Assembly: GCA_019828565.1 (NCBI GenBank) | Contig: JAHDYR010000025.1 | Span: 124,001-188,000, forward strand | From: Carpediemonas membranifera BICM | Lineage: Eukaryota; Protista; Fornicata | DNA length: 64,000 nucleotides | Reading direction: 5' to 3' | Part shown: positions 6,025-35,954 of the stretch, one piece after another | Numbering within the stretch: position 1 is the stretch's first letter | Layout of the letters: the number at the start of each line of letters is the position of its first letter | Made by a program: the position numbers and the translations under genes | Notes under the pieces: model-generated | Told to the model about the DNA's origin: nothing | Database searches by the model: none | Seen by the model: only the letters and a program-made list of their open reading frames with translations

Positions 6025-6058
6025 TGTGCTGCGCAGGATTAGAATTGTTGAGTCCAAA
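6025..6058. repeat. Direct repeat (putative target-site duplication) of E1, 3' copy
   Basis: tgtgctgcgcaggattagaattgttgagtccaaa; 33/34 identical to 8427-8460. Confidence 0.92.
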
Positions 6059-6200
6059 ACACACAGTGATCCAAGCAGCATCAGGATCGCAGTGTGGTTC
6101 ATCATACTCTATCAACCGTGCGCAGCATATCACGCGCGCTGCAGCGCGTGCTTGCTCAACTTCGCAAGTTAATGATAGCGAGGAAGAGCACCTCTCTGGG
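6059..6200 (-). ncRNA. Putative omega-RNA-like scaffold of E1
   Basis: Between ORF end and repeat: stems CACGCGC/GCGCGUG (6131-6150) and CACAC-U-GCGAUCC/GGAUCAC-U-GUGUG ending 1 nt before the direct repeat; position typical of TnpB/Fanzor omega-RNA. Confidence 0.45.
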
Positions 6201-8065
6201 AGTGGAAAGGAGATTGCTCTATCTGATCTGAAGTTGCATCGAAGGTGCACCAATGGATGTTCTCGCTGGCGCTCTTATCTCGGTGAGAGAGATTGAGAAG
6301 TATGTCTCTCTGCTCGGGATGCCGACGTAGCCGTTCAACGCGCCATGGAGCTCCCTCGCACGCGGGATTCTGGCAGAGCATGGTGCGGTGTGTGTGCACC
6401 ACACGTCTGAAGTGTGCTTTGCAGTATGGGCACACGATGGAAGTGCGGAATTCGGAGACCATCGTGACAGTCACGACGACGTTGTGCCGGAGCATTATGC
6501 CAGGAAGTGCTCGAGCAAAGTGGCGGTACGGAGCACAGGAGGGAGTGCCGGCAGAACCGAACAGTGCAGCCCCATACGCGACTTCGAGGTGAATGGGCTC
6601 CGGGGGGCGCCCGCCGAGATCATCCAGGAGTTGACGTCCAGCCCGGGCGAAGTGCTTCTGGCGCAGACAGTGATTGGCAAAAAGTCGCACGGCGGAAACA
6701 CTTTCTCGTCCCCTCGTTGATGATCTGAACGATGTTCTCATGGACAAACCTAATCGACTGTTTGAGAGCCTCTAGACTTGTCGTTTTGAACGATGCTGCG
6801 CTCATATTCACGCGGAAAGAGGGGGTGGCAGTGTAGCCACACTTAGCGAGTACGCCAGATACACTCTGCCCGTCTGGGCGGCGGATCGTGTAGCCGCCCA
6901 GCGACCGAGCACCAGGGTCGAAGCCCATGAGAGCTTGAATGTCCGGGGCAGGAGTAGCCTCGGCGTCATCCTGACCGAGCCGAGCCCGCTTGTTGCTGCT
7001 ACCCTTTTTGTACGTGGGCCGGTCAGCCACCCGACCGCCACTGTATTTCTCGCGACCCACCCAAACCGTCACAGCAACAGAGACCCCGTCTGTCTTCACA
7101 GAGAGCACTCTGCGGAGTTTGGTGATGTCGCCGTGATCACGCTCGTATCTATCAACCTGCTCGTCGGTCAAATTCTTAGTTGCTGACCAATTCACGTGCT
7201 CGCGGGCACCGCTTCATGGCTGGGGTGAGCACTGTCACTCTGCGCTCGATGGTCATGAACCCAGGCCTGACCGGTGCCATCGGCACGAACGGGACGAGCT
7301 TCGGCTCTGGCAGGGCCTGACTGAGCTCGAGGTTCACGGCACGAGTGAGTGTGACCAGCTTGGTCACTGCAGCACTCATGCGCGTGACGCACGACAGCAC
7401 GCCGACGAGAGCCTCGGCCACGGTACCAGTGCGACCCACCCGCTGCTCCTCGGGCAATGCATGTATTTGAGGATGATACCTGCCATGATCGGCGGCTATG
7501 GCGGCAACCTCAGTGTCGAGCTCGCCTTGGGTGTCGAGAAAATCCTGTCGAACACCCGGCCGATCATGGAGGAGCGAACGCACCCGGTCTAATCCAGCAC
7601 GAAGACGGGTCAGGTACCCGGGTGACGCGCGCGAGAGCCAGACCGGGTGGCTGTGGAGTACTCGCCCAACCAGCTCTGAAATGGCGCTGCAATTCCAACG
7701 TAGGCTTCCTTGAAGTCCCGGACGAGTGGGGTTATGTCAGGGTCCCTCCACATCGCCAGGTCGCCAATCCACCTGCACCGATCCGCTGCCTTTGCCTTCG
7801 ACACCTTTTGCTGAGCAATGCTGACGATCTGCTTGAGGACCTCCTGGTCAAACAAGTTGACCGTCCTCGGTGGGGTCACCACGTGCGCAGATCCAGAGAC
7901 GTACGCAAGCAGGCAAGTGAATGTGTACTTAGCCTGCGTGAAAGAACGCATGCCGGGTTCAAGATTTCCTCTTCCTCGCCGCGGCGCGTTGTTATCGCCT
8001 CCACCGTTAATCTCGCCAATGGCCTTGTTAACGGAAACCTTCACCGTGTATATCTTGGAAGGCAT
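6169..8065 (-). pseudogene. Fanzor1-like (TnpB-family) RuvC nuclease, about 630 codons, three frameshifts as assembled
   Basis: VLSVKTDGVSV, RuvC-I LMGFDPG, RuvC-II VSEFRTS, Zn finger CPYC...CQNPAC, RuvC-III HRDKSASENI; pieces in ORFs 7610-8089, 7176-7583, 6620-7195 and 6169-6747. Confidence 0.88.
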
Positions 8066-8426
8066 CGGAGTATATTGAGCTGCCTGCATCGATCATTTCT
8101 TTTCAGGGTTCATCAGCTAGCAGCATCCCTCAAAACACAAGAAACCAGCATCATACAACACAAAGCGTCTTTACTACTAGCTACAACCGCTTTCCACCAC
8201 TAGTGTCTCTCACAACAGACAAAGATGACGACGACGACATGAGCTTCAGACGCCGGCAATGGACGACAGATGAGCGCGTAACAGACGAGCACAGACGCGA
8301 AAGAAGACAGCAGCGTTCGACACAGATGATGGACGACAGACGACGCATCTTTTCGTGCAGACCGACGACTGAAAGCACGAAAGCCCGATGGTACAGACGA
8401 GGGCTGAAGTGGGTGAGTGGAGGTAG

Positions 8427-8460
8427 TGTGCCGCGCAGGATTAGAATTGTTGAGTCCAAA
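8427..8460. repeat. Direct repeat (putative target-site duplication) of E1, 5' copy
   Basis: tgtgccgcgcaggattagaattgttgagtccaaa. Confidence 0.92.
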
Positions 8461-8667
8461 TACCACAACCAGCTTGTCATAAAGTGCGTCGTGAAGTATT
8501 GGCAAGTTGTGAGCCCATCGGGGTCTGTGGTGCTTCATATAGCGTCATATGACAGTCCGAGCAAGTTTTCCCGCCGTTTCGAGACTCGGGTTCTGTCGAT
8601 TCTCCTCAATCTCCACAACAAGCCAAGCAAGGTCACAGGGTCACCGGATTTAAACAGTATGAACTAC

Positions 8668-9240
8668 TTAAAGCTTACGGAACTCGAACTCGACGTCCTT
8701 GGAGGTCATGGTCTTGTAGACAGTGGAGAAGCACTCAAGACGGAACTCGGCGGTGGAGCGGTCGGCGGGGTCGAGGAAGACGTTGATACGGCGGGAAGAG
8801 TCAACGCAGTAGCGGGTCTGCTTGCCGGTGATCTTGACGGGGTAGACGAGGTCCTCGAGGAGGGAGTCGTGGACGGCGGTCAGGGTGCGAGAGTGGGGGC
8901 GGTTGATACGGCCGGCACGGACGCGCTTGGCCTGCTTGGCGACGATGCGGCGGTCAGCGACAACAACAACGGTGCGAGCAAGCTTCTTCTCAAGCTCACG
9001 GACGAGCTTGGTCTGGATCTTCTGGAAGGCAGTAAGGAAGGGAACGGGGACGTAGACAACGGCAGCCATCTCAGTCTCGTTCACCTTAACCTCAACGGCG
9101 CGGGAGAAGAAGAGAGTCTTGAGGGCAGCGCCGAACTCGGCGTGCTGCTCAAGATCAAACACAGCCTCAGCGACGCTGCGCTCAAACTCGGTAGGCTCGG
9201 AGCCATCGACCTTCTTGATCTTCCAGGAGGGGAATACCAT
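8668..9240 (-). CDS. RPS7: 40S ribosomal protein S7 (eS7)
   Basis: KIKK...PTEFE..VA...FDLE, LVRELEKK, RPHSRTLTAVHDSLLEDLVYP, VYKTMTSKDVEFEF; ATG at 9240. Confidence 0.95.
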   Translation of the reverse strand: MVFPSWKIKKVDGSEPTEFERSVAEAVFDLEQHAEFGAALKTLFFSRAVEVKVNETEMAAVVYVPVPFLTAFQKIQTKLVRELEKKLARTVVVVADRRIVAKQAKRVRAGRINRPHSRTLTAVHDSLLEDLVYPVKITGKQTRYCVDSSRRINVFLDPADRSTAEFRLECFSTVYKTMTSKDVEFEFRKL

Positions 9241-9521
9241 GCTATACTGCGACGAGAGCGAAAGGGCCACTTTTGCATGAAAAAAAGTGATGACAGTTTT
9301 GATGAAAGCGATGATTTGTAGTGTTGGGCGCCTACAGGATTTAGTCGCAGCCAGTACGGGAGAAATGGATTGGAATATGTGCTGTGCTGTGCTGACACCG
9401 ACTTATCGCAGTCGACCAGCCTTGTGCGAACAAAGAACAGCCAAAGAGGCCAAAGAGCTGAGAAAAGCCTATAAGCCTTGATGGAACTGTCTTCTGGCTC
9501 TAGACGGCTTTTTTCTCTCTT

Positions 9522-9577
9522 GCGATGAAGTATCATAGAGTGCACAGTGCAAGCAGTAAAGTAACTCTCAATCGTCT
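9522..9577. repeat. Uninterrupted paralogue of the E2 insertion site
   Basis: 9525-9577 identical over 53 bp to 26653-26705 and contains the 30-bp E2 direct repeat; left edge gcgat matches the other E2 flank (24318-24322). Confidence 0.85.
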
Positions 9578-10177
9578 GTTGCAGAGCTTCTTGCAAAACG
9601 TCCGCATTTTAAGACACAAAACTTGGCCTGGGAATTATCTCGGGAACCAACCACATCCTGATCAAACTGCACAGCGCACCGCATTTACCACAGAATTAGA
9701 TCAAATGAATCTGCCAGATGATGGGAATACCGAAGTTATTGACGCAATCGCCAACGTTGTTCGCGAGGAGAACATTGAGCGTCTCGCCCAACCAATGGAG
9801 CCTTACGAGGATGATGTAGACTCTATTGAAGCTATGTTCCGCCTCCACCGGTCTGAATTGAATCTGTGCGAGTTGCCTCCACCCCGGCAAAACTGGGACC
9901 CAGCCTCGAGGCATCTGCTCAACTTTAAGCCCCCGCCGCCCCCTCCTAACTAGATGGGAGTGGTAACGAGACAATGAGACATTTATACGATTGGCATCAA
10001 GCGAGTTAGCTTGGATTAAACGTGCAAGTTGCAGTCGGCGAGCATTTGTGAGACACCAAGAGCAGCAGCAAGCTAATGCAAAAGCAGGACGCATCAATGG
10101 GGTCTCAACATGCCATGGAGCGTCTGCTTCACCCCGGCAGAGTCGGGTCGGGTCGCGTCAGTCACTACCATTTGACG

Positions 10178-11525
10178 ATGCAGACAAACGAAGCCGATCT
10201 TGGTTCTGAGATCTCAGAGCACACAGAGGCCACTTCACAGATAGAGAGTGACTCTGAGCCGGAAGAAGCGTCCGAATTCGAGTTTGGCCTCTCTGATATT
10301 GATGATGACGGTTTGTTCTCCAAAATGAGCTAACGCAGAGCAGATTGAAACACATCCATCGTCCGACAACAGTGGAAACCTTGCCTATCTCGCTGCATGC
10401 GAGTATTTGGACGTTATTCCATCGTCGAATTTCCTCGCACAGATCAACCAAGCCAAGGTATCCTTGCGCCACGACCGCATCGGCCCCAAGGGTGCCCATG
10501 CGATTGCAGAGTGTCTCCGCTTCTCCGAGATTATCAAGGATCTCGAGCTCTCCCAGTGTAACATTAGAGCGGAGGGGGCTGTCTCCATTTTCGACGCGGC
10601 CAAGCTGTCCAACGCCCCTGTCGAGCACCTCCGCCTCTCTGGGAACAGCATCGGCGAGGGTGAGTTCCTGACTCGCGTTTCAGCGGACATGGCAGGGAAA
10701 CTTGCCGAGCTTCGTGATCAGAGCAAGAAGGCTGCCAAGAGACGCCAGATGCGGGGCAAGAAGGAGAAGCAGAAGAAGAAGGAGGAGCCCACTGAGGAGG
10801 AGCTCGAGGAGCGCCGCGTCCAGCAGGAGTGGGAGGACGGTCTGGCCCGTCTCGACGTCTACCAGCGGTCGTCCCCCGCATCCGAGGCCGTGGCCGCGCT
10901 CATCAACGGCACTGTAAGTCTGAAGACGCTGGACTTGTCCCACAACATGCTCACGGACACGTTCATGGACGTCGTCGGCCTGGCCTCGTGGGATGCCGCC
11001 CCCCTCGAGACGGTGTCGTTCGCCCACAACAAGCTGACCGACGGGTGCGCCGAGTCTGTCGGCCGGGTGCTGACGATGAGCTCGGCGGAGACGATGGACC
11101 TTTCGTTCAATCGGTTCGGGGCGGCCTTCGTGACGATGCTGGCCGAGGCCGTCAGCCAGAGCTCTGCGAAGAAGCTCATACTGAGAGGCAACGCCCTCAA
11201 GGACAATGCCGCTGCTCTTCTCACGGCGTTCAACTCACGCCAGACCTTCATCGAGGCGCTCGACCTAACGAGCTGCGGGCTGGGCCCTAAGAGTGCACAG
11301 GAGCTCGCCAAGCTCGTCGCTGGGTCGACATCCCTGAACGAGATCATCGTTGACGACAACACTCTGGGCACCGCGGATGACCGAGAGACGCTCGTCGCCG
11401 CCCTGGAGACGGGTGCGGTCGTGAAGGTCAGCATGCGGGGAGTCCCGCTGACGGCGGAGCAGAAGGAGCGCTTGAAGGGCAAGAACGTCGTGCTCGGTGA
11501 CCGCCCACTGTACATGAAGCTGTAA
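10178..11525 (+). CDS. Leucine-rich repeat protein (RI-like LRR, LRRC74-like); intron 10311-10338
   Basis: YLAACEYLDVIPSS...LRHDRIGPKGAHAIAECL and repeated LxxLxLSxN; 28-nt GTTTGT...CTAACGCAG intron joins the 10076-frame ORF to the 10407 frame; start could be 10076. Confidence 0.75.
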
Positions 11526-11711
11526 ACCGCTTTTCTCTCCGTTGTCCATGCCAGAGCTGCAGGATAGGCCCCATTAATGTGGTAGGCAGACTGTATAGAC
11601 AGCAATGCATCGTTGGCAGTAGTATCCAGCCCATCTTGCTCGACTCAAGGCATCTGACGCGCTCAATTTTCGATCCGATCTTTCGAAGCAGAAGCCCATA
11701 ATAGCGCAGAA

Positions 11712-12326
11712 ATGCCTTGGGGAGACATGGATACATTCGGTAGTGACGAAAACAGCCATACATTTGTCGCTGCGTCCATAGCATTGTCATCTACGCCAGG
11801 AAGTGCTGAATTCTGCCCAATCGAGCTCAGTCTCGCTGATAGGGCGCACAGAGAAAGTTTTGGAACACTCGCGGGCACCTCCAACAACAATGGGATCACA
11901 AACGGCTCTGTTACGCTGGTTTCCGACATTCCGCAGCTGACGAAGCCCTCCGACATTTTCCCCCCGCGCCCCCACCACCGTGCGACGAAGGCGCCGAAGG
12001 TCGACCACTCCGACGATGTGCGTCTGATAGCCCGCGTGGTCTTTCGGACCCTCGGGATGTTTGCGTCGGTCCTGGTTAACATCATCGGGCTGCCAGGGGC
12101 CCTCGTCCTCGTCGGCCAGGCGTCAGGGATCAACCCTCTCCTCTTGCTGTGGATCCCCGGCGCCATGCTCACCGTTCTCTCGCTCTTCATCCTTACGACG
12201 GAGGTTATCTGGCTCAAAACTGCGCGTGAGCTAGACTGGAAGCCCCTCGTCATCCCCATGATGTTCGGCCTGGAGGGGCTCGTGCTGCTCATGACACTGC
12301 CATTTATGCTGGACCATGTAACGTGA
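11712..12326 (+). CDS. Hypothetical membrane protein
   Basis: 204-aa ORF with 3-4 hydrophobic segments in its C-terminal half; 3' end may be extended by splicing. Confidence 0.5.
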   Translation: MPWGDMDTFGSDENSHTFVAASIALSSTPGSAEFCPIELSLADRAHRESFGTLAGTSNNNGITNGSVTLVSDIPQLTKPSDIFPPRPHHRATKAPKVDHSDDVRLIARVVFRTLGMFASVLVNIIGLPGALVLVGQASGINPLLLLWIPGAMLTVLSLFILTTEVIWLKTARELDWKPLVIPMMFGLEGLVLLMTLPFMLDHVT

Positions 12327-12467
12327 GTGATGCCTTCACATGGCGTCCTCCTTGTATATATGCCACATGCTCTGCTGATTATAAATACGTTAAGCCCCTT
12401 GTTGTTTAACAATCCAGTTGACTGCGCCGGAGGAAGAGTTTACATAAGCCAGGAAAGCATCGCCGAC

Positions 12468-13490
12468 TCACATGACACAGCACTGCACCGTCCTGGCGGC
12501 GTCTGGTCCCTGCGTCCGCTTGAACAGCAGCGGCTGCGCCTCCACGCCATCGCCCGTCTGCCGGATCATCACCACGCCGCCCCTGTTCCACGGGAGTCGC
12601 CCCGGGGCGCTGAACACGGTCGTAGTCAGCCCCTCGTGGACCGTGGACAGCCCCTCGGGCGTCACCTGGTGGGACCGGATGATGCCCTTCACCCCCAGCT
12701 GCCGACACACGCCAGCGGACACATCGGGGCCGTACATAACCCCGGCCGCCCTGGCGCTGGGCTGGGTGCCGTCTGTGGGCATTGGGTCGGACCAAAGCAT
12801 GTCCGCCATCGGGCCCGTCGTGGGGCAGTCGACGTGGCGATCGAGGTCCTGGATCGTCTGTAGGTCAACGGTGGCAGGATTCCATGGCCCACCGTGGACG
12901 ACGAGTGCTGTTCCGTGGACGATGGTGGCGATGGGGATGCTCTGAAAGAGGCTCAGCGACTCCTCGTACACCAGGTCGCTGCCGTACCGCGCCCGGACCT
13001 CCCGCTGGAACCCGTACCGAGCCGTGCACTTGCCCGACTCGTGGTTGCCCCTGTTGATCATGACCTTTCGGGGGTCCACCACGAGACGATAGAGCAGCAC
13101 GGCCAGGATCTCGAGGCTGAACGGATCCCGGTCAACGATGTCGCCGTTGATCAGCATCACTGCATCCTCTTCATCAGCAGCTACCATGTACCGCAGGAAG
13201 TCCGGGAACTGGCCGTGCAGGTCCCCGATGACGGCGATGGGGCCCTCAGATGGATCAAGCGTTACAACGTTCGAGCGGCGGTCGAGGATAGTGCGTGCAC
13301 GGCGAATAAGACGTACTAGACTCTCAATGTCTGGGAGGGCGAACCCTTGGCCGTCAATCAGCGCTGTGACGAGTTCTTTGACGCCACTGGCCGTAGGAGG
13401 CCACTGAAGCGAGAAGTATTTCACTTGCTTATCAGGCGCTTCTAGTGGCGTTGCCTGACTCTGTGTTTCGTCCAACAGCCGCTGAGACAT
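12468..13490 (-). CDS. PPP-family Ser/Thr protein phosphatase with C-terminal CaaX (CCVM)
   Basis: GDLHGQ, GDIVDR, RGNHE, HGG, DMLWSDP, IRSHQ, TVFSAP. Confidence 0.9.
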   Translation of the reverse strand: MSQRLLDETQSQATPLEAPDKQVKYFSLQWPPTASGVKELVTALIDGQGFALPDIESLVRLIRRARTILDRRSNVVTLDPSEGPIAVIGDLHGQFPDFLRYMVAADEEDAVMLINGDIVDRDPFSLEILAVLLYRLVVDPRKVMINRGNHESGKCTARYGFQREVRARYGSDLVYEESLSLFQSIPIATIVHGTALVVHGGPWNPATVDLQTIQDLDRHVDCPTTGPMADMLWSDPMPTDGTQPSARAAGVMYGPDVSAGVCRQLGVKGIIRSHQVTPEGLSTVHEGLTTTVFSAPGRLPWNRGGVVMIRQTGDGVEAQPLLFKRTQGPDAARTVQCCVM

Positions 13491-13766
13491 CGCGTTCGAT
13501 TCCGCCGTGTGTGCATAACCTGCGATTTCCACAGATACGTCCGAACCACGCGGACTAGCGGTAGCTTAGTCACCTAAGTCTAGCCATAGCATATGTCTCG
13601 CGTTTTGGAAGAAGCCCCGGCTCTTGTCAGTAACTTTGTTGACCGACTCTGGCCGACACGACGCTGAGTGCTCCCCTCTGCCAAGTGGCCGAGACAATGG
13701 AACGGAGTGATCCGGCTTGCAGTATCTACAACATTTAAACCGCGCATTTATATCAAATTCTGAAGG

Positions 13767-23404: not shown

Positions 23405-24253
23405 ATGGCTAACCCCGAGAAGTTGTTGAAATCCGCACAAAAGAAGATGAAAAAGAGTGTTCCTATCTTTGGAAAGCGTGATTACCCTGGAGCCATCCAG
23501 GATCTGAAGAAGGCCGAGATCGACTTCAAACGCGCCAAGGACTTCGCATCTCTTGCTGTGTGCTACTCGATGCTTGCTGACTGCTACGAAGGCGAGGACC
23601 AGCTCTTCATGGCCGGATCAGCGGTGTCCAACGCCATTGAGGCCAAGGTCCGCGCCACCCCCGACGCCATTGCCACCATGGTGCCCCAGCTGAAGTCCAT
23701 GGGGGATCGTGCCGTCGACTGCTACAGGTCTGACGGCCGCCACGATGCCGCCGCGGACGTTTATTCCCGTGTGGCCGAGCATATTGCCCCGTCCAACCTC
23801 GACGCCGCCACGGGCATCCTCCTCGACGCCTTCGAGATCATGAAGGTCGAAGACAGGCTGAAGTCCGGCATCCAGTTCCTCAAGAAGGCGGCGCTGCTCT
23901 TCATGAAGCACGGCGAGTACGACCAGGCGATCGAGACGTTCAACGAGGCCATCGAGGTCTACGGCCAAATTAGACAGAACCACAACATCTCCAAGTCCGT
24001 CCTTGCTCTCGTCCTCATTCACCTCAAGCGGGGCGACCTCGACTCGGCCAACTCCGTGGTCGCCGAGCATGCCCAGTATATTGGCAACGACGAGGGCCAG
24101 GTCATCGATAAGCTGCTGATGGCCTTCCAGACGAAGGACCCCGAGCTGCTCGAGCAGGCCAGGGACATGCATATCCTCAAGGTCGTGGATGCTGAGTGCT
24201 TCCAGCTCAGTAGGAAGCTGTTCGTCCAGACGGAGGCGGATGACGTGCTGTAG
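23405..24253 (+). CDS. NAPG: Gamma-SNAP-like (NSF attachment protein, TPR-like)
   Basis: A.KKMKKS.F...DY..A...KKA...FK N-terminus, helical repeats, LVLIHLKRGD, LLMAF..KD.E. Confidence 0.72.
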   Translation: MANPEKLLKSAQKKMKKSVPIFGKRDYPGAIQDLKKAEIDFKRAKDFASLAVCYSMLADCYEGEDQLFMAGSAVSNAIEAKVRATPDAIATMVPQLKSMGDRAVDCYRSDGRHDAAADVYSRVAEHIAPSNLDAATGILLDAFEIMKVEDRLKSGIQFLKKAALLFMKHGEYDQAIETFNEAIEVYGQIRQNHNISKSVLALVLIHLKRGDLDSANSVVAEHAQYIGNDEGQVIDKLLMAFQTKDPELLEQARDMHILKVVDAECFQLSRKLFVQTEADDVL

Positions 24254-24322
24254 TTGATTTCTTAGTCGCGGGTAGGCGTTTAAAAGGTGCGCTTGTTAGC
24301 TTTAAGATGATAGGACAGCGAT

Positions 24323-24352
24323 TGAAGTATCATAGAGTGCACAGTGCAAGCA
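24323..24352. repeat. Direct repeat (putative TSD) of E2, 3' copy
   Basis: 30/30 identical to 26654-26683. Confidence 0.93.
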
Positions 24353-24445
24353 CTGCGTCTCTCCACTTCAATTAGCTTGCCCGGAGGCGAAGACTAGCGG
24401 CTGGTTAGCCATAATTGGTGTATTGGGGTTATAGTTGGGAAGACG
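24353..24445 (-). ncRNA. Putative omega-RNA scaffold of E2 overlapping ORF 3' end
   Basis: CAAUUA/UAAUUG stem enclosing GGCU-AACC-AGCC and GCC-UCCG-GGC (cUNCGg) hairpins; conserved with E3 35790-35860. Confidence 0.6.
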
Positions 24446-26269
24446 GGCTGGATTTCTGAAAGCACTGGCTTGATACTGTGCATCCGTCATGAGGCCGCAA
24501 TCCAAGATGTTCTGTGCAGCATTCTTGTCTCTGTGGGAGAGATTGAGCCAAGTGGTGGTAGTAGGATCGGAATTGAGGCGTTGCTGTCTGTACCATGGAG
24601 CACCTTGACAATTCGGGTTGTGGCATCGCATCGTGCGCCTCGTGTAGCGAGTTCTACGGAACCTCGCGCGGCAGAAGGGGCAGACGAGTGAGGTTCGGAA
24701 CTCGTTAGTCATCCGCCCTTCAGCAGGATGTTGAAAGCTCTCATGATGTGTGGTAGTAAGGTAGCAAAGCGACCATACGGCGCGCATGGGTACACCCGAC
24801 GGGGCGTCTTGAATCTAGCGCTTCCGTAGAAGACAACCAGCCTGGTGGGGGCTGCCCGGGGAGGGGCAATACCGCGAGGGAGTCGCCGAGGAGTCCATCC
24901 TAAGGTGCGAGCAAGCTGCTCCCCAGCTCCGTGGAAGTGCTTTTGACGCAAGATGTGGTTCGTCAGGCGCACTCTGCGGAAGCTCTTGACCATCCCAGCG
25001 TCGAATATTTCCTGCTCGTGGAGGAGCACAAACCTAATCGAGTTTTGTAGACTATCTAGATTTGTACTTTTGAATGACGCAGGAGTCATATCGAACGCGA
25101 AGCTGGGGGTCTTGGTGTACCCACACTTCGGGACCACACCGGAGCTGGTGGTGCCATCTGGGTGGCGGATGAAGAATCCACACAGAGCCCGAGCACCCGG
25201 GTCGAAACCCATGACCTGGGCATCGGGGTCTGGCGCGGGGCGAGCATCTGCGTCATCCACACCCAGACGCTCCCGAGCCTTTCGCTTCATCGTCGGGTTG
25301 CCACTGGCACGTCTGTTGACGTATGGCAGAGCACCAACTTGGACCGTGAGGTCCACGGCGACCCCATCTGTCTTGACAGACAGCACCCGACGGATGTTCG
25401 GAGGAAGAGCCTCCAGCTGCTCTCGCGTCATGCGCTCAGTGGCGTGATGCTCCGGGTCGACCCCAAGTTGGGCAAGCCAAGCCGGGTTCAGCACGTTGAG
25501 AGAACAGGGAACGTGCATGAACCCGGGGCGGACCGGAGCCATCGGGACAAGCGGAACAAGCTTGGGGCCAGCCAGCGGCTTGTCACCCGGAAGAGGTGGA
25601 TGGGCGGTGTTGAATGCCGCAACCATATCCGTGAGCTCTCCCAGAGCCATCAACGATCGCCTTGACAGCGCGTTGTTCGGTGCGCAACCGGGTGATGTCG
25701 TCCCGGGGCACGTCTGGATCACGCTGAGTCAGGGCAGTGTCGACCCGAGTAATGATCTTCGCCAAGCGCCAGCAGTAACCTTCAAGGGCATTGACGAGCC
25801 ACAGCTTGGTGCTCGTGGCATATTCGCCCAGCCACACGTCGAACTCGCGAGGGCACTGTTGACGAGCTGCCCTGAGGGCGGTGCAGAGGCGGATGATGAA
25901 CTCGTCATGCCACAGTGGCATCTCGGCTATTGAGGTGACAACCTGCCGAACTGCGGCGTATTTTTTCGCGCCCAGGAAGCGGTCGACGAGTGAGTCGGCG
26001 GCGAGGTTTCGGTACTCTCCACTTCGTCGGTAGGCGACGATAACGATGGCCTGGTGCAGAGCCTGGTCATGCACGGGCAAGGAGAGATTGGCGTGGTGGC
26101 AACACGCGGCGATGTATGACAGAATGCAAGTGTGAAAGTACTTGGCCTTCGTGAACGAGCAGAGCTTGTTCTCCAATCCGGCGTAGAAGTCCGCGATGAA
26201 AGGAATCACGTTTCTACGGTTATGGAGAATGGAGGATATGGAGAACTTGACCGTATAGATGCTGGTCAT
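24368..26269 (-). pseudogene. Fanzor1-like RuvC nuclease, about 633 codons, two frameshifts as assembled
   Basis: MTSIYTVK start like E1 MPSKIYTVK; PKLVPLVPMAPVRPGF, SVKTDGVAV, VMGFDPG, TNEFRTS, CPFC...CHNPNC, HRDKNAAQNI. Confidence 0.88.
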
Positions 26270-26653
26270 GTGAAGCTCTGCGTTTTGCGGTGAATGAACC
26301 GATTTGATGTGTGTACAACACACATCAAAGACGACAGACGTTTAATGAACGAGACTATGCAGTGATAATGGCGAGAATTAGAAGAACTGAAGTGTTTTAT
26401 CTTCAGGCAGCGGCATAGAAGAGCCCACTGTGCAATGGAAGGCCATGGTGATGATTGCAAGACGTCATGATCAAGACCCCGAAATCCGACAAGCAGAAGA
26501 GAGCGGATGGAAGTAAGATGGGTAGACGATAGGTGGGAAGCTAGTTGCTTGGCGAGAGGACTGGAGAAGCACTGATTGATGACCCCCGACGATGATGACT
26601 GACTATCGAAATATCACTCTCAAGAAGAAGGAAGGGAGAGCGGGAAGGGGTAA

Positions 26654-26683
26654 TGAAGTATCATAGAGTGCACAGTGCAAGCA
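26654..26683. repeat. Direct repeat (putative TSD) of E2, 5' copy
   Basis: 30/30 identical to 24323-24352; extends to a 53-bp match with 9525-9577. Confidence 0.93.
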
Positions 26684-26755
26684 GTAAAGTAACTCTCAAT
26701 CGTCTAGCAGACTTCAGCGATGCTGTTCGCAGCTTTAGGTTGATTTCGCGTTCGA

Positions 26756-27136
26756 ATGGACGAAACAGATCCTCTTGCCAAGATGAAGGCTCTCATTGGG
26801 CCTAAAGGAGAAAAGTCGAAGAGAAAGCGCTCCAGCAAAACGCCAACGAAAAGTCACCATGAGTCCGCTGAACAGGCCACAGACGCACCGGTGCGCCCAG
26901 GAAAGCGGAAGGCCCCTCTGCGCGACACAAAGTATTCCGATTCGGTGAAAGTAGGCGCAACGTCCTTCTATCCAGCTCCTCCGATCCGAAAAGGCGGTCC
27001 GAAAAAAGAGAAATGCCCACATACCTGGCACAACCGGTTCAGCATTCCCCCGGGATGGCGCTGGGATGGGGTAGACCGCTCCAACGGGTTCGAGGTCAAG
27101 AGGGAGGAAGCTCTGGCCGCCAAGTCATCCCGCTGA
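26756..27136 (+). CDS. BUD13: BUD13/CWC26 RES-complex splicing factor (short form)
   Basis: [21 protein letters not shown] signature. Confidence 0.88.
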
Positions 27137-27407
27137 TCGGCCGATTTGATCGGGGCCACGTACTGCCGCAGTGGCAGTGACCTTGCCCTTTGAGGATACC
27201 GGATGGTGCGACTGCCACCAATTTACTTCGCAAGCAACAAAGAGTTGTTCTTTCGACACCAGTTCTTTCGTGTGATGGAAGGCCAAGGAAAAAGCTAGGA
27301 GCATAAAGGACGATGCATGTGGGCACACTCTAAGCAGCAAGGACAGCTCTGAGGTGGCGTTCAAAAGGACCAAATTTTGCGCAGTTTTGGCAGCGTTTGT
27401 TCAGACA

Positions 27408-28434: not shown

Positions 28435-28620
28435 GTCCAGTGTATTGTAAAGCTTCATTCTCGTGCTTGGTTGGCCGGTGGACTTGGTGATCGCTCAGAA
28501 ATTGAAAACTCGACGAACAGGCTCTGCTACCTCCATCGCAACGATGGCACGCCTGACGACTGACTTTTCCCACCCGGTGTCCGAAGGGGCTTAATGCCAG
28601 TCAAAGGTCGACCAACGCTC

Positions 28621-29548
28621 AATTTCACGACTCGAACGCGTTCAGTGATGCCGACCTAGCCCTTAGGCCAGCCAGACGGTGCCACTGCCGGCTGGCTCTC
28701 GTTCGTGCTAAACTGCACATTGTAGAAGCTTTTGGCAAAGCGCAGCTAGAATGAGGTTTGTTCCAACGTCCAGTGCACCATCACACAGCTTTGGCCAGTT
28801 TGGTTCTGGATCGTCGTTTTCGTTCGGCGCGAACGCTGCTAAGCCGCAAGGAGCAGCGACGCCCTCGTTTGGCGCTCCCGCCGGCGGCTTCGGCAGCACA
28901 CCTGCACCAGCAAACACCGGGTTCGGCGCACAGCCCGCATCGGGCGGCAACACTACCGGGTTCGGCGCCTCCACCGGCACTGCTGGCGCGAGCACTGGCT
29001 TCGGCGGCTTTGGTGCGAGCGCTCAGAAGCCCGCTGGAACCACAGGCTTCGGCGCCCCCGCCACTGGCACTTCCACCACCACGACAGGCTTTGGTGCGCC
29101 TGCTTCGGGGTCCACTGGCTTCGGCGCTGCGGCAGGATCTACTGGGTTCGGCGCGAAGCCTGCTGGCACCACTGGCTTCGGCTCCACAGCCACGACCGGG
29201 TCGACTGGGTTCGGCAGCACCACACAGCCGGGTGCGGCCACCACTGGCTTTGGGGCGAAGCCCGCAACGACTGGCTTCGGCGCCTCGACTGGCACAACTG
29301 GCACGGCCGGATTTGGCGCGTCTACTGCGTCAACGGGCTTTGGGAGCTCGACTTCAACTACTGGTTTCGGCGCGGCTAAGCCCGCAACGGGCTTCGGCGC
29401 TTCAACCTCAACTGGATTTGGATCGACCGGCACATCCGGCTTCGGCTCGTCTGGCTTCGGCGCCAAGCCCGCCGGCACCACAGGCTTTGGCGCGAGCACG
29501 GGCTTCGGGTCCTCCAGCGGCTTCGGCCAGCAGGCTCAGCAGCAGGCC
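28621..29548 (+). repeat. Segmental duplicate (promoter, intron and FG domain) shared with 60414-61467
   Basis: Near-identical DNA apart from three in-frame repeat-unit indels (60, 42 and 24 bp) and a few substitutions. Confidence 0.95.
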
Positions 29549-30190
29549 AACATGTTTGGCCTGGCAACGTCCACGCCTGCACCGCCCGTCCAGCAGGCGG
29601 TAGGCAGCGGGTTGAACATCAGCGGCACGATCACGGTGGGGCAGCTCGACGACAACACTCAGAACGCCCTCAAGTCGATCGACAAGAAGGTCAAGGGCTG
29701 CGTCGAGGGCGTTGACGCTGTTGGCCAGGAGACCGGCGCCCACATCGACGCGCTGCATGATCTCATCCGGAAGCTGCAGACGCAGGTCGCCGCGGCCACC
29801 GAGTCCGCCGCCGAGGCGACGAAGATGACCGAGGACCTCGGCAACACCACCGACCGCCAGGCCCGCACGCTGGCGGTTGCCCAGCAGTTCCAGACCCGCA
29901 TGGAGTCGCAGCAGTCGTCCGCGGCGGTGGACTTTACCGGGTACTACCAGGGCGAGGTCGACACGCTCGCCGGGTTGATCTCTGACCTCGAGCGGATGGC
30001 GCGGCACCTCGAGAACGTGCTCGGCGCTGGATCGTTCGAGGTGGAAGACGGTGTGTCCGCGATCCACGAGGCGGTGGAGTGCCAGAGCCAGGCCCTCGTG
30101 CTCGTGGCCAGCCAGGTCGCACGTCTTCACAGGCGGGTGCAGGAAGCGAAGCAGACGCACGGGCGGCGTCTGGGGTTCACGGGGAGGTGA
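28751..30190 (+). CDS. NUP58: FG nucleoporin, Nup58/Nup49-like; in-frame intron 28756-28788
   Basis: GFG repeats then TVGQLDDNTQNALKSIDKKV and coiled coil; 33-nt GTTTGT...TCACACAG intron yields an MSFGQFG start. Confidence 0.7.
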   Translation: MRFVPTSSAPSHSFGQFGSGSSFSFGANAAKPQGAATPSFGAPAGGFGSTPAPANTGFGAQPASGGNTTGFGASTGTAGASTGFGGFGASAQKPAGTTGFGAPATGTSTTTTGFGAPASGSTGFGAAAGSTGFGAKPAGTTGFGSTATTGSTGFGSTTQPGAATTGFGAKPATTGFGASTGTTGTAGFGASTASTGFGSSTSTTGFGAAKPATGFGASTSTGFGSTGTSGFGSSGFGAKPAGTTGFGASTGFGSSSGFGQQAQQQANMFGLATSTPAPPVQQAVGSGLNISGTITVGQLDDNTQNALKSIDKKVKGCVEGVDAVGQETGAHIDALHDLIRKLQTQVAAATESAAEATKMTEDLGNTTDRQARTLAVAQQFQTRMESQQSSAAVDFTGYYQGEVDTLAGLISDLERMARHLENVLGAGSFEVEDGVSAIHEAVECQSQALVLVASQVARLHRRVQEAKQTHGRRLGFTGR

Positions 30191-30336
30191 GGCCACACGT
30201 AAATGGACATAGGCTGTGTCGGATTTGCCGGAATATTTTGACCGTTGTTGACCATAGTACTGAAGCCAGCTTCCGGCGTTTGCATCAGGCGATGAGGCAG
30301 GCATACCGAACCAACCATCAAAAATTCCGATAGATA

Positions 30337-31638
30337 ATGCATTCACTCGCGAATCGAACATATCGAGCGCAATCTGCATCGGGACAACGTTATAATCCAA
30401 GCCATAGCCTTCCAGCGGCCAACAACAAGCGACCTGCGCGGAAATCTTCCTCATTTATATCTGTAGAGCAGGTTGTAGACGAGAACACGCCTTCAAACAC
30501 TGAGAACCGATCCGAGATGAGCATATCTCCCTTCAGGCGCCGCGATTTGCCCCGCAAAGCGGCTCCATCCAGGACCAGCTCGACGCACACAGGCAACCTG
30601 TCTTCACCTGCGAACCACCCTGCAACGAACCTCCGCGGCACGGGCACGACGGTCCGGAAGCCCATGACAGGCGCCGGCCCGGCGCCGTATTTCTCGTTTG
30701 CCCAGCGGCGTTATGTCGCCTCGGGTACTGCTTCACACGGTCCTGACCACGTCATGGAGAGCGACACGGTGAAGGCTGCCGTGCAGGACCTAGACACGAT
30801 GGACGACCTCGCGGCGCAGGTCCGGGCGATCCGGGAGAGGGCGCTGGCGGCCCTCAAGGGCGAAGACTCGTCGGGATCCGAACACAGCCTCGGGGTCACC
30901 CCGGGCTCCGACCGCCCGCCCCAGAACCAGCCGAACGACCTCGCACGGCACCAGGAGGAGCAGCGGGAGAAGCGCCGCAGGTTCCGCGAGGAGACCGCCG
31001 CTGAGCGGGAGTGTATGGTGATGTGCGATATGGTGAAGACGTCGCTCTCGTCCAAGGACCCATCCGAGGACAGCCGCATGGCCCTGTCCCTCCAGGCAGT
31101 CGTCTCGGTGCTCCATCAGGTCCTCACAGAAAACACCCGGTTTGAGTCCGATCCGAAGTCGACGCTGACCGTGCCTGCTGAGGAGGTGGGCAGCTTCTTC
31201 GAGAACAACCCTGACCGCCCGACATCACGCGACATGTTCCAGTTCATGTACAACATCGCCTATCGGATCAGATTCAGGCCCGAGCTCGGGATCGCCGCGC
31301 TCATTTACATTGACAGACTTATCGAGAAGACCGGCATAGTATATGGCCGCAGCACGTGGCGCCGTGTGACGTTTGCCGGCATGGTTCTTGCCCAGAAGGG
31401 CTGGGAGGATTCGTGCTACGACAACAAGGACTACGCCAGGACGTTCAAGCCACTGACGGTTCGCACGGTCAACCGCATCGAGCGGGAGTTCCTGTGTGCC
31501 GTCGGACACGACCTCTCGGTGCACCACCGGGCGTACACAAAGTATGCCAGCCACCTCATGACGCTGAAGAAGGGCGCGTGGTACCTTGGCAACGAGAGGA
31601 CACACGGGGTCGAGCGGCCAGCCCTGGACCTGGAGTAG
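30337..31638 (+). CDS. Cyclin Y-like / PHO80-type cyclin
   Basis: ELGIAALIYIDRL...TWRRV...LAQKGWEDSCYDNKDYA...VNRIEREFL...YTKYA..L. Confidence 0.8.
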   Translation: MHSLANRTYRAQSASGQRYNPSHSLPAANNKRPARKSSSFISVEQVVDENTPSNTENRSEMSISPFRRRDLPRKAAPSRTSSTHTGNLSSPANHPATNLRGTGTTVRKPMTGAGPAPYFSFAQRRYVASGTASHGPDHVMESDTVKAAVQDLDTMDDLAAQVRAIRERALAALKGEDSSGSEHSLGVTPGSDRPPQNQPNDLARHQEEQREKRRRFREETAAERECMVMCDMVKTSLSSKDPSEDSRMALSLQAVVSVLHQVLTENTRFESDPKSTLTVPAEEVGSFFENNPDRPTSRDMFQFMYNIAYRIRFRPELGIAALIYIDRLIEKTGIVYGRSTWRRVTFAGMVLAQKGWEDSCYDNKDYARTFKPLTVRTVNRIEREFLCAVGHDLSVHHRAYTKYASHLMTLKKGAWYLGNERTHGVERPALDLE

Positions 31639-31786
31639 AGATGACTCGGACTGTAAATACCGCGGAACACGGGCTGGCGGGGAGCTGGGATGTGTAGGAC
31701 AGCGGTTGACTCTGATCGCTCCTGACAGCGTATTAAACGCCGTTCTTTTGGAACCGGGCTAACCTGCGAATATTTCGGTTAATAAC

Positions 31787-34171
31787 ATGTCGCAAGCAGA
31801 GCTTTCTAGGCAAGCTGGCAGAACAGCCAGTGGACACACTATTCCTGGGAGGGATGCTATCGTCATTTCCGGTACGTCGTATGACGTGGATGAGCTGAAA
31901 GAGAAGTTCAAGGCCTTCATTCTCCAATACCGCCCCGGAGTCACCGAGGATGATGGGGACGTGGACATGGATGAGCAAAATCCCCTTCGGGGCAAGTATG
32001 TAACGATTCTGTACGAGCTTCTCTCCTATCACGACGGCAACGGCGACCTTCCCATCGATATGCACGAGCTGCACGCCCACGACTCGAGCCTGTACGACGC
32101 CATCGTCCACTTCCCCGGAGCTGTCGTCGCCATGTTCGATGGGGCCATTGAGGAGATCGCCACGGAGCTGATCATCCCATACATTGTTGGCGAGATCAAC
32201 AGCGAAGAGGCCGACGAGGAGGCTGTCGGGCAAATGATGCAGGAGATCCTGAGCCACTGTACTTTCTCCATCCAGCCCTACAACCTCATGGACGCTGATG
32301 TCCGCACGCTCGTCGAGCTCGGGCCCAGCGACGTCGACAACCTCGTCCAGGTCCGCGGCATGGTCACGCGCACCAGGGGGCGCGAGTCTGAGGTCGGCAT
32401 AGCCAGCTTCAAGTGCTCGAACTGCTCCCGGATTGAGAGCCGCGAAATCCTCATGGGCAAGGTCGACCACCCCTCAGAGTGTCCGAACTGCAAGCAGCTC
32501 GGCACGTTCGACATTTACACGCCCGTCAGCGGGTTTATCGATAGACAGAAGATCGTGATCCAGGAGGCCCCCGATCAGATACCAGTCGGAGAGACCCCCA
32601 CCTCGGTCAACGTGCACTTGTCCGCCGCCCTCGTCAACAAGGCCCGCTCGGGCGACCGCGTCAACGTCGTCGGCATCTTCAGAGTCTCCCCAAGACGGTC
32701 GCAGAGGGGCCGTAAGGCGATCCTCTCTGAGTTCCTGACCCATCTTGACCTCGTACACCTCAGCAGGGAGGACCACCTCGACCAGGAAGCCGCCGACGGT
32801 CATTCACGCGACATGCCCCTTGCCGAGACCGAGCAAGATAGAGCAGGCATGGTGCGGAAGATCATCGACTGGGTGAAGGAGAAGGAGGGCCGGCCCGACA
32901 TGGTCTACAACGCCCTTATAGACGCCCTCGCGCCCTCCATCATCGGCCACGAGAGGGTCAAGCTCGGTCTCCTCTGCCAGATGGTCGGCGGCGTGTCAAA
33001 GCTGGTCAACGGTACCAGGTTGAGGGGCGAGATGCACGTGCTGCTCGTTGGCGACCCGGGCGTGGCCAAGTCCCAGCTGCTAAAGCAGGTCCACGACGTC
33101 TCGGCCAGAGGCGTGTTTACCTCGGGTAAGGGCTCCTCCGCTGTCGGTCTGACCGCTGCTGTCAACAAAGACCCCGAGAACGGCGAGATGATGCTCGAGG
33201 TCGGCGCCCTCGTACTCTCTGACGGCGGCATCTGCTGCATCGACGAGTTCGACAAGATGTCCGACCAGACGAGGGCCACGCTACACGAGGTCATGGAGCA
33301 GCAGTCCATCAGCATCGCCAAGGCCGGCATCGTCTCTGCCCTGCGTGCCCGCACCGCTGTACTGGCCGCAGCTAACCCGCGGACGTCTCGGTATGATCCC
33401 AAGCGGAGTGTCGTGGCGAATATCTCGCTTGGACCCACGCTTCTCTCAAGATTTGATCTGATTTACCTGATGCTGGATAATGCCGATGCCGAGACCGATC
33501 GCAACACGTGCGACAACATCCTCCGCATGCAGCTGGGAGACATGGACGTCCAGAAGGCGACCTCATTGCCTGAAGGCGTCACACTGCGCCAGTACATCTC
33601 CATTGCCCGCATCATCAAGCCCCAGCTCCGTCGTGATGCTCGCGACTACATCCAGCAGAAGTACCTCGACCAGAGGTCCGCTGGGTTCCACACGGGTGCC
33701 GTTGCGGTGCTGCCGCGTCAGCTGGAGAGTATGATCCGGATCGCTGAGGCGCTCGCCAAGCTTCGGATGTCATCGGAGGTCACCGCTGCTGACGCGGAGC
33801 AGGCATTCATCCTTGTGCAGGAAGCGCTGCTCAAGGCGGCGACGGACCCCAACACCAACCGACTGGACATGAACATGCTCGCCACGGGCATGGCGCAGTC
33901 GGACAGGCAGCGCCGGGTGACAGTCGAGGTGGCGTGCCGTAACGTGCTCAAGAACAGCCCAGTGATGATGTCGCACGTTGATCTCGTCAAGGCGGTTCTT
34001 GCTGCACTCGAGAACAACGACGAGAAGATCCCCGAGGCGCAGGCCCGAGCCCTGCTGCAGGGGTACCTCAGCGATCGGGCGCGGTTGGCGGAGCACATCT
34101 TCTTCGAGGTCGGGCCGAGGGGCGTCGGCGGGCTCTACGGACTGAAGACGAACGACTACAGGCAGTTCTAA
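31787..34171 (+). CDS. MCM4: DNA replication licensing factor MCM4
   Basis: C4 Zn finger, QEAPDQIPVGETP, GDPGVAKSQ, TSGKGSSAVGLTA, GALVLSDGGICCIDEFDKM, LHEVMEQQ, SRFDLIY, PRQLES. Confidence 0.85.
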   Translation: MSQAELSRQAGRTASGHTIPGRDAIVISGTSYDVDELKEKFKAFILQYRPGVTEDDGDVDMDEQNPLRGKYVTILYELLSYHDGNGDLPIDMHELHAHDSSLYDAIVHFPGAVVAMFDGAIEEIATELIIPYIVGEINSEEADEEAVGQMMQEILSHCTFSIQPYNLMDADVRTLVELGPSDVDNLVQVRGMVTRTRGRESEVGIASFKCSNCSRIESREILMGKVDHPSECPNCKQLGTFDIYTPVSGFIDRQKIVIQEAPDQIPVGETPTSVNVHLSAALVNKARSGDRVNVVGIFRVSPRRSQRGRKAILSEFLTHLDLVHLSREDHLDQEAADGHSRDMPLAETEQDRAGMVRKIIDWVKEKEGRPDMVYNALIDALAPSIIGHERVKLGLLCQMVGGVSKLVNGTRLRGEMHVLLVGDPGVAKSQLLKQVHDVSARGVFTSGKGSSAVGLTAAVNKDPENGEMMLEVGALVLSDGGICCIDEFDKMSDQTRATLHEVMEQQSISIAKAGIVSALRARTAVLAAANPRTSRYDPKRSVVANISLGPTLLSRFDLIYLMLDNADAETDRNTCDNILRMQLGDMDVQKATSLPEGVTLRQYISIARIIKPQLRRDARDYIQQKYLDQRSAGFHTGAVAVLPRQLESMIRIAEALAKLRMSSEVTAADAEQAFILVQEALLKAATDPNTNRLDMNMLATGMAQSDRQRRVTVEVACRNVLKNSPVMMSHVDLVKAVLAALENNDEKIPEAQARALLQGYLSDRARLAEHIFFEVGPRGVGGLYGLKTNDYRQF

Positions 34172-34399
34172 TAAAGGGCTTGGCATGCTGTCTCCGCAGG
34201 GGACTCCCATGAAGGATGTGGCATGGAGCAGCGGGTAGAGGCTCATCGCCTCATCACCGGCCTGACATGTGGCGTGCTGCTTCATATCGCAGGATAAGGC
34301 ATCTGTCGCTGTGCTATTGAAGGGTCAAACAATGTGTTTATACTGCGCAACACTGCCCTGTCTCCCTCCTACTCACGTCTTAAGTCGGTAGGGAGATCG

Positions 34400-35854
34400 T
34401 CTTCTCCAGGGCTTCCACAAAGCGTCTTCTTCGTGGACGTCTTCTTCCAGCAGGAGTTGGCCGGCGTTCACGCCATCCTCGGCAGGGTCAACCCTGTGAT
34501 CCTCGCGTGTCTCCCCTTGCTGTTCTGGGCGGCTCACATGGGTGAGAACGACGGGCTCCCAGTCTCCCAGGCTGCCCCACGCATTCTCTCTTGCGTCTGG
34601 GCAATTGCAGACGGAGTGGAGAAGTTGAGTGGCCTCATCAGCCACTTCAACGGGGAGTACTCGATGTCGCTCCGCCAGCCTCGCCTCGTGCCGATCGTGC
34701 CCATGGCCCCCGTCCGACCGGGCTTCATGGCCCGTGATCGTGAAACGATGGGCCTACTGAACGAGAACTTCTGTCATCGTGGGAATTAATCCCACACTCC
34801 CGCACGCCTCCAAAAAAGACGCTACCGGGACAACCCCAGGTCAATGGGCCGTCTGCTCAGCCTGAGCACCGATGGGGTCTGTGTGGCAGTGACGGTTAAG
34901 CGAGGCGGCCACTATCGGCCACAACATGATGCGAGCATGCCTGTTCGAAAGCGAGCGAGAGGGCGGGAGAAAGAGCGCCCTCGACTCGGGACCAATAATG
35001 CCGATGCTCCGCCCGCGCCGGATCCTGATGCCCACCTCATGGGGTTCGACCCGGGCGCGAGGTCCATCGGATGGTATTACATCAAGCACCCCGATGGCAC
35101 CAGCTCCGGCGTCCTCCCAAAGTGCGGATACACTAAGACGCCAAGTTTCGGCTTTGATATGACGGCCGCGTCGTTCAAGAGCACAAGACTAGTGAGTATC
35201 AACAACTCTATTAGGTTTGTGCTGGACAACGCGAACGACATTTTCGAGGCTGGAATGCGTAAGTCTTTCCGCCGAGTGCGCTTTGCGAACCACATCCTTC
35301 GCCAGAAGCACTTCGCCCGCTGCGGCCAACAGTTGGCTCGGGAGTTCGGTTGGCTTCGCCACCATCCCATCGCCACCCCCATTCGCCTGAAAGTCTTCTA
35401 CGGGAGCTCGGGATTCACCACGCCTGCTGGTATGTTCATTCCTTGCGCGCCATATCGAAAGTTCGCGAGAGAGATAGTACCCCTTCTCAAGGGGTATAAC
35501 ATTGTCGTCGTTCTTAACATGGTTAACGAGGACCGCACCACCGTCGTCTGCCCTCACTGCCACGCCCCCTACAAGCGAGTTCGTCCGCGTGATGACCAGC
35601 ACGTTCACCCACATCGTGTGATGCTCTGCGAAAAACCACAGTGCCGTGGTGCTCAGTGGCGCGCAACAGTTCCTGATGCTCTGAATGTTGATCATCGGGA
35701 CAAGAGTGCTGCAGAGAACATCCTGTGGCGTTCTCTTGCCACGGAAGATGAGCTCAGTGGCTCTCCGTTCAGTTGCACATTGATCCCGCGCCTTCCAACA
35801 TCATTCCAGTATCATCAATTGGCTAACCGCCAACATTCGTCTACGGACGGATGA
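34400..35854 (+). pseudogene. Fanzor1-like RuvC nuclease, lacking roughly the N-terminal 200 aa, with in-frame TAA at 34787
   Basis: PRLVPIVPMAPVRPGF, SLSTDGVCV, LMGFDPG, VNEDRTT, CPHC...CEKPQC, HRDKSAAENI. Confidence 0.85.
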
Positions 35855-35909
35855 GGTTGTACAGTTTGGCACTTTGATCGTTCCTTTCAGGCCCTGTCTT
35901 GGAGGTTCG
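35790..35909 (+). ncRNA. Putative omega-RNA scaffold of E3
   Basis: UUGGC-UAACC-GCCAA (35819-35833) and CAUUCGUC-UACG-GACGGAUG (35834-35853) hairpins matching E2 with a compensatory change. Confidence 0.6.
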
Positions 35910-35920
35910 AACAATGTGTT

Positions 35921-35930
35921 TATACTGCAC
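35921..35930 (+). promoter_or_regulatory. Instance of recurrent start-proximal motif WAWMCTGCR (inside E3 direct repeat)
   Basis: tatactgcac 34 nt before ATG 35955; similar motifs lie within about 50 nt of 12 or more other start codons in the window. Confidence 0.5.
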
Positions 35931-35954
35931 AACAGTCGCCATAATTTTCGGGAA

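Follow-up and report, generated by a model that had tools for sequence, protein, structure and literature searches.

Fanzor1-type genes on mobile elements with Ty3/Gypsy-like terminal-repeat ends in Carpediemonas membranifera

The closest described counterparts of the elements considered here are DNA transposons whose only open reading frame (ORF) encodes the RNA-guided nuclease Fanzor1, such as SPu-1 of Spizellomyces, the ascovirus SFav-1 group, MCi-2 and MCi-5 (PMC3627910). The present analysis concerns three element families, E1, E2 and E3, each represented in a 64,000-nucleotide stretch of the Carpediemonas membranifera genome (contig JAHDYR010000025.1, positions 124,001 to 188,000), which we call the window and whose numbering is used below. 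Like these transposons, E1-E3 have a single Fanzor1 ORF with the DPG motif and the shifted glutamate, a predicted structured 3' end and multiple copies that are mobilised in trans. Unlike them, they have no real terminal inverted repeats (TIRs), an unspecific target-site duplication (TSD) of 5 bp, TG...CA termini resembling the long terminal repeats (LTRs) of Gypsy elements, a polypurine tract, an internal copy of the terminal 26-34 nt, promoter targeting at a fixed distance, and no fixed target-adjacent motif (TAM). According to a 2026 review, a Fanzor-encoding retrotransposon is undocumented (PMC13565253), and we found no paper covering both Fanzor and Carpediemonas.

The Ty3/Gypsy retrotransposons, together with terminal-repeat retrotransposons in miniature (TRIMs) and large retrotransposon derivatives (LARDs), likewise have TG...CA ends, a 5-bp TSD, a polypurine tract before a TG...CA module, and solo modules. 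Ty3 and Tf1 insert position-specifically near promoters, which is a further likeness to E1-E3. In E1-E3, however, the two end modules agree only over the first 26-34 nt, a search by eye gave no primer-binding site, and the Fanzor cargo is antisense. The Ginger1 and Ginger2/TDD transposons (PMC2836005) also combine Gypsy-like integrase chemistry, which E1-E3 would share, with TGTNR-type ends and TSDs of 4-5 bp, but they carry TIRs of 40-270 bp and their own transposase, whereas E1-E3 have inverted matches of 3-6 bp, direct repeats and a polypurine tract. Finally, the Helitron2-type elements CRe-1,2,3 of Chlamydomonas (PMC3627910) carry Fanzor as sole cargo too, and long direct repeats flank some of their copies; those repeats are variable, insertion-specific TSDs after TTTT, in contrast to the constant, element-encoded repeats of E1-E3 with their separate 5-bp TSD.

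The present analysis indicates, with a probability that we put at about 0.7, that E1-E3 are non-autonomous, LTR-derived elements integrated in trans by a Gypsy-type integrase. The evidence consists of their ends, their TSD, their spacing from a host motif, their similarity to the LTRs of possible helpers, and the mobility of copies with dead Fanzor genes. The searches covered 24,237,836 bases in 69 contigs of the assembly; the anatomy was read from 70 fetched loci, and for the E1 flanks and the integrase loci we relied on match positions together with those loci. The E3 protein gave 123 matches genome-wide, and the E1 and E2 DNA searches 228 first-look candidates each.

The initial annotation had described three transposase-free mobile families carrying a Fanzor nuclease between long direct repeats, and this description holds, the nuclease being of the Fanzor1 type. 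The repeats lie at 6025-6058 and 8427-8460 in E1 (34 bp, 97% identity), at 24323-24352 and 26654-26683 in E2 (30 bp, 100% identity), and at about 34317-34352 and 35899-35934 in E3 (36 bp with a core of 25 bp, 89% identity). It is also correct that no second ORF and no TIRs are present in the three window elements, the outermost inverted match between their termini being merely 3-6 bp. The repeats had further been taken as specific to each insertion, as the element boundaries and as unusually long TSDs, and none of this survives a comparison of the copies, which yields one repeat common to all copies of a family. In every fetched copy the same repeat occupies both positions, and repeat matches number 191 for E1 and 231 for E3 across the genome, with 0 control hits. 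A third copy of the E2 repeat in the window, at 9525-9577 and with 23 more identical bases, gave the first hint that the repeat is part of the element. Homology between copies continues beyond the inner repeat up to a TG terminus, and the true TG...CA ends lie 7-33 bp outside the inner repeats (TG termini at 8467 in E1, 26716 in E2 and 34310 in E3). The sequences that had been compared as element 5' ends (CTACCTCC, TTACCCCT, CTGCCCTG) thus lie inside the elements, and correspond to the reverse complement of the polypurine tract.

The elements delimited in this way are flanked by a sharp 5-bp TSD, which is exact in 29 of 45 left/right end pairs and carries one mismatch in 4 more; in this tally no pair matches at 4 bp or at more than 5 bp, and shuffled pairs match in 0.4% of cases. 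Several of the failures are explained by recombination (the loci L008 and L011 have exchanged flanks) or by nesting at the end of another element. Solo modules with a TSD occur at L018, L033, L055 and window 9526-9591, and the copies frequently include solo ends, as well as deletion derivatives and chimeras. Since the TSD is 5 bp and the repeats are common to each family, the widely staggered cuts or RNA-templated repair suggested for long TSDs are not needed. The fixed TSD together with the TG...CA termini also led us to reject IS605-like hairpin ends and recombinase ends of the Crypton or Replitron type.

The ends of all three families resemble those of a resident Gypsy element. A 96-bp LTR with 16 occurrences in the genome, several of them in pairs about 4.3 kb apart, adjoins an integrase/chromodomain tail at L063 and a gag start at L035. 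Its first 10-13 nt are identical to the left end of E1; the E2 left end, once reverse-complemented, agrees with its final 10 nt at 9 of 10 positions; and its start agrees by eye with the E3 left end at 7 of the first 10. In E1, E2, E3 and Gypsy alike, a polypurine tract stands in the same register directly before the (inner) repeat, in E1-E3 antisense to Fanzor; the last 5 nt of the E1 tract plus TGTG are identical to the Gypsy tract/LTR junction, which resembles the junctions of all three families. Inner repeat and leader together form a left module with TG...CA ends, of 41-169 bp in E1, 59-68 bp in E2 and 43 bp in E3. The best reading of these comparisons is that the ends of E1-E3 would derive from short LTRs of resident Ty3/Gypsy retrotransposons. 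Potential helpers are abundant, with at least 150 scored matches each for the rve integrase domain and for reverse transcriptase, many in the order reverse transcriptase then integrase. Several rve matches lie in open frames of recurring length (639, 654 and 655 aa), some of which could be stand-alone integrases. Two further Gypsy families are present at L023 (1-1500 and 2400-3828): one shows a gag-protease start behind a short LTR, then a palindrome in place of the tRNA primer site, and the other an integrase/chromodomain tail repeated in tandem, as three copies of 472 bp.

E2 and E3 insert at a fixed distance from a motif of about GCAGKWTAWG. For E3, 16 of 19 motif-bearing flanks have it 11 nt upstream of the left end; for E2, 19 of 20 have it on the opposite strand, 12 nt from the left end. 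In the 3' flanks it is rare. It is found in either orientation within 60 nt upstream of 12 of the 29 host ORF starts in the window, compared with 3.9% of random stretches (p=3e-10), where the ORF starts are first-ATG guesses and one site belonged to the training set. At L063, a Gypsy LTR end lies 12 nt from a motif copy inside an E1 repeat, which is the E2 spacing. Every family carries a copy of the motif within its repeat, which accounts for the nesting of elements at each other's ends. Both E1 and E3 have a motif on one side and a host ATG on the other, and through the outer repeat this ATG acquires a new motif at a distance of 15-40 nt upstream, suggesting that the element may thereby spare the host gene.

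As regards the cargo, the three divergent coding regions reported initially were all recovered, each with TDGV, GFDPG, E(F/D)RT(S/T), a C4 finger (E-x6-CxxC) and HRDK within its repeat-bounded region; between families, the proteins have about 45% identity. The published Fanzor1 pattern, i.e. DPG in RuvC1, a catalytic glutamate six residues before the zinc finger and RD..N in RuvC3 (10.1101/2023.08.09.552727), is matched by the proteins P0011, P0015 and P0002, the L005 ORF and window E3, and the Fanzor2 pattern by none; P0016 departs from the former through a C-to-R change in the finger. In the Atlas, the proteins fall with DUF8286/Cas12f1-like_TNB clusters (score 0.96-0.98). The top match of a structure model of modest quality (mean predicted local distance difference test score, pLDDT, 60.5) is the Spizellomyces Fanzor SpuFz, with E=1.5e-7, a probability of 1.00 and a template-modeling (TM) score of 0.34-0.36. 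Sequence searches of Pfam, NCBIfam and PDB gave weak matches only (Cas12f1-like_TNB, E 0.03-0.08). The close protein relatives all carry the annotation Carpediemonas membranifera, and those outside the genus are distant (best E 2e-6) but share the catalytic columns. Judged from sequence, the cargo genes are thus of the Fanzor1 nuclease type, and the fact that three divergent families keep their catalytic triad intact suggests recent selection on nuclease function. A stop-free frame of at least 600 aa remains in only 1 of 40 elements, and none of the three window ORFs is complete, each being broken or truncated; some of the frame breaks may be assembly errors. Compared with shuffles, the last 80-200 nt reach z values down to -4.5 in E3, about -3 in E1 and only -1.6 in E2. 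The terminal hairpin, ending in the outer repeat, is a candidate for the omegaRNA scaffold.

Identical internal deletions were found at different sites with intact TSDs, and copies with a dead Fanzor gene therefore move in trans. In the mechanism that we propose, an element read antisense to Fanzor would begin with an LTR-like module truncated to its first 26-34 nt; at its other end, the complete TG...CA module would stand after the polypurine tract. A Gypsy-type integrase, which we infer to be supplied in trans by other elements, would insert it with a 5-bp TSD while tethered, probably by a host DNA-binding factor, 11-12 nt from the promoter-proximal motif. An antisense RNA would be copied by non-canonical reverse transcription, in which the strand primed at the polypurine tract would rebuild the outer repeat from the inner one, and the remainder of each end would be inherited unchanged. 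Within the Gypsy-integrase model we slightly favor such a passage through RNA.

The evidence for the RNA step comes from variants shared between the two ends. In E1, a position 6 nt from the terminus varies between A and G, and the paired ends are A/A in 10 cases, G/G in 2 and G/A in 3 (Fisher p=0.095). A variant of E3, located 12 nt from the terminus and with 28 occurrences at inner and outer positions, is present at both ends in 4 pairs, about 1 being estimated by chance, and L015 has a private variant 7 nt from the terminus that is common to both ends. This sharing fits a process primed at the polypurine tract in which the inner copy serves to rebuild the outermost bases, blurred by frequent recombination; gene conversion fits as well. 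In chimeras (L013, L022, L032 and protein P0015), the left portion comes from one family and the right portion from another, the two being joined in the conserved RuvC region. At L063, an E2 copy contains a patchwork (2655-2990) of an E1-type long leader, an E3 3' piece and an E1 5' piece, then an E1 3' half, which we read as template switching among the three families.

Several observations weigh against the proposed picture. The whole left module is repeated at the right end in none of 38 elements, only the first 26-34 nt being common, and canonical LTR reverse transcription is thereby excluded. Inspection of the elements by eye, without a screen of tRNA genes, revealed no primer-binding site of the TGG or tRNA type; the two helper LTRs inspected also have no TGG-type site and show short palindromes there. 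A variant 23 nt in is found at the outer end only and has been inherited by 6 copies, and discordant inner/outer pairs occur in both directions. GT-AG could be placed at none of the deletion junctions on either strand, and intron loss was accordingly dropped as proof of an RNA step. The 12-nt spacing of a Gypsy LTR comes from one LTR, and E1 ends are thinly sampled. In 14 E3 and 14 E2 sites, no conserved bases that could constitute a TAM occur in the TSD or in the preceding 5-6 nt, whereas in known Fanzor1 systems the 5' TSD forms part of the TAM (PMC13565253). Simple homing by Fanzor would hence need a very relaxed or displaced TAM, and ordinary homing is not obviously possible at these sites. 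Finally, no empty allele or circle junction is present in the public contigs of four runs, in which depth cannot rank the element parts. The contigs of all four runs differ from the window at 7 sites in the SNAP gene (23900-24253), and two runs continue into a different 3' region; another isolate or a paralogue may be the source of these contigs.

We have also considered that elements with the same LTR-derived anatomy now move only as DNA, cut and pasted by an integrase that is either Ginger/TDD-like or a free Gypsy-type enzyme, with the polypurine tract and the inner repeat being relics kept alike by gene conversion and Fanzor serving restorative homing after excision. Such movement would explain why the end modules are never homogenised and how the outer-only variant came to be inherited, and the chimera L022 (E1-left/E3-right) has a 4-bp TSD-like match despite its differing repeats. 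TDD-4/5 give 5-bp TSDs and Ginger ends follow TGTNR (PMC2836005), and a model of homing favors elements that excise (PMC13565253). However, it leaves unexplained why the polypurine tract is in exact register and the inner copy near-perfect in three families that differ in their repeats and have only about 45% protein identity, and the Ginger TIRs are far longer than the inverted matches seen here; no Ginger partner was identified, the rve loci themselves not having been read. We regard movement as DNA only as unlikely, though it is the most serious of the alternatives.

In an improbable alternative, the outer repeat would be a guide and the inner repeat its target, such that Fanzor would cut its own element and produce the solo ends, deletions and chimeras that are so frequent; a TTTAC-like word is kept in E2 just before the inner repeat. 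In E3, however, no conserved word precedes the inner repeat, and inner repeats bear no cut scars. Moreover, the outer repeat pairs as the closing stem of a terminal hairpin in all three families, in the manner of a scaffold.

That E1-E3 are canonical TRIM-like non-autonomous retrotransposons with tiny LTRs is a reading to which we give equally little credence. Their TG...CA ends, 5-bp TSD, polypurine tract, solo modules with a TSD and abundant Gypsy helpers are all as expected for such elements, but LTR pairs should be identical at insertion, while here the differences beyond the first 26-34 nt are fixed per family, and no primer-binding site was found. E1-E3 fail this test of two identical LTRs and are hence not classed as TRIMs. 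The original view of the 25-34 bp repeats as long TSDs made by a new integration chemistry, which draws on each window element having its own repeat and on the long TSDs described for 5'-truncated Helitron-type Fanzor elements of Chlamydomonas (PMC3627910), can be dismissed, since a family's repeats are identical at every insertion and true 5-bp TSDs flank the full elements.

Returning to the LTR-derived elements moved by a Gypsy-type integrase, E1-E3 are a new type of carrier for a known nuclease family, three high-copy families on LTR-derived ends that share their insertion geometry with a resident Gypsy element. It is possible, and we offer it tentatively, that they are the first retroelements with a nuclease of the OMEGA class (short for obligate mobile element-guided activity), combining a Fanzor1 cargo, an antisense RNA, a Gypsy reverse transcriptase with non-canonical strand transfer (rebuilding of the first 26-34 nt primed at the polypurine tract, with no copying of U5), a promoter-tethered Gypsy integrase and ends that re-supply the displaced motif. 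The LTR-derived ends and the shared insertion geometry make the question of why mobile elements keep an RNA-guided nuclease directly testable in Carpediemonas membranifera, a free-living protist that is in culture and lacks nonhomologous end joining (PMC8516963). The selective role of Fanzor would probably be homing by homologous recombination in a cell without that pathway. The missing fixed TAM at the target site points to a TAM that is very relaxed or displaced in this highly divergent Fanzor1, which would be of interest for tools, and the fixed 11/12-nt spacing provides a defined motif for studies of integrase tethering, as well as a candidate core promoter element of the lineage.

In the window, E1 occupies 6025..8467 on the minus strand (2443 bp, TG...CA ends, delimited by end comparison among copies). 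Its outer, 3'-terminal repeat (6025..6058, minus strand) forms the 3' strand of a long terminal hairpin, the omegaRNA candidate, and includes, at 6033-6042 on the plus strand, an instance of the host promoter-like motif. The coding region follows at 6169..8089 (minus strand) in several frameshifted pieces. The polypurine tract at 8411..8426 (plus strand) adjoins the inner repeat and is antisense to Fanzor, and the mini-LTR-like left module (8427..8467, minus strand) consists of 41 bp, with the inner repeat and a terminus like the Gypsy LTR start; in other copies it measures 92 and 169 bp. A promoter-like motif at 8478..8487 (minus strand) lies 10 nt beyond the left end. This copy has no matching TSD (CTGGT vs GTCCT) and can be read as a recombinant or small deletion. 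A kinesin gene at 4241-6016, with a chromodomain-like C-terminal tail, has its ATG 8 nt beyond the E1 right end, and E1 thus separates it from its promoter-like motif.

The E2 element (24323..26716, minus strand, 2394 bp) has a 6-bp terminal inverted match and an 83-bp internal deletion, and is flanked by the TSD ATCGC at 24318..24322 (3') and 26717..26721 (5'), both on the minus strand. It comprises a frameshifted coding region (24368..26269, minus strand), a polypurine tract (26630..26653, plus strand) adjoining the inner repeat, and a 63-bp left module (26654..26716, minus strand) made up of a terminus that matches the Gypsy LTR end in reverse complement, a variable spacer and the 30-bp inner repeat. 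The promoter-like motif at 26729..26738 (plus strand) is 12 nt beyond the left end and 17 nt upstream of an ATG at 26756. The additional repeat copy at 9525-9577 was considered as an empty target site and rejected, because it belongs to a solo E2 left module of 66 bp (9526..9591, minus strand) with its own 5-bp TSD (1 mismatch); the motif at 9604-9613 is again 12 nt away.

The E3 element (34310..35934, plus strand, 1625 bp) is a 637-bp deletion derivative whose deletion recurs in two other insertions. The TSD GTCGC is present at 34305..34309 (5') and 35935..35939 (3'), and the promoter-like motif at 34289..34298 lies 11 nt upstream of the left end, all on the plus strand. The 43-bp left module (34310..34352, plus strand, TG...CA) includes the inner repeat, which the polypurine tract (34353..34376, minus strand) adjoins antisense to Fanzor. 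A C-terminal Fanzor1 ORF of 336 aa (34844..35854, plus strand) retains the full RuvC triad and the zinc finger and fits the Fanzor1 pattern. It is followed by the terminal hairpin (35855..35934, plus strand; z about -4.2 to -4.5), the omegaRNA candidate closed by the outer repeat, and the next host ATG is at 35955.

Elsewhere in the window, two FG-nucleoporin genes, Nup62-like and Nup54-like (28621-29527 and 60414-61422), have near-identical 5' sequence over about 1 kb, including the promoter region, after which they diverge; this can be read as a recent duplication or conversion of the FG domain.

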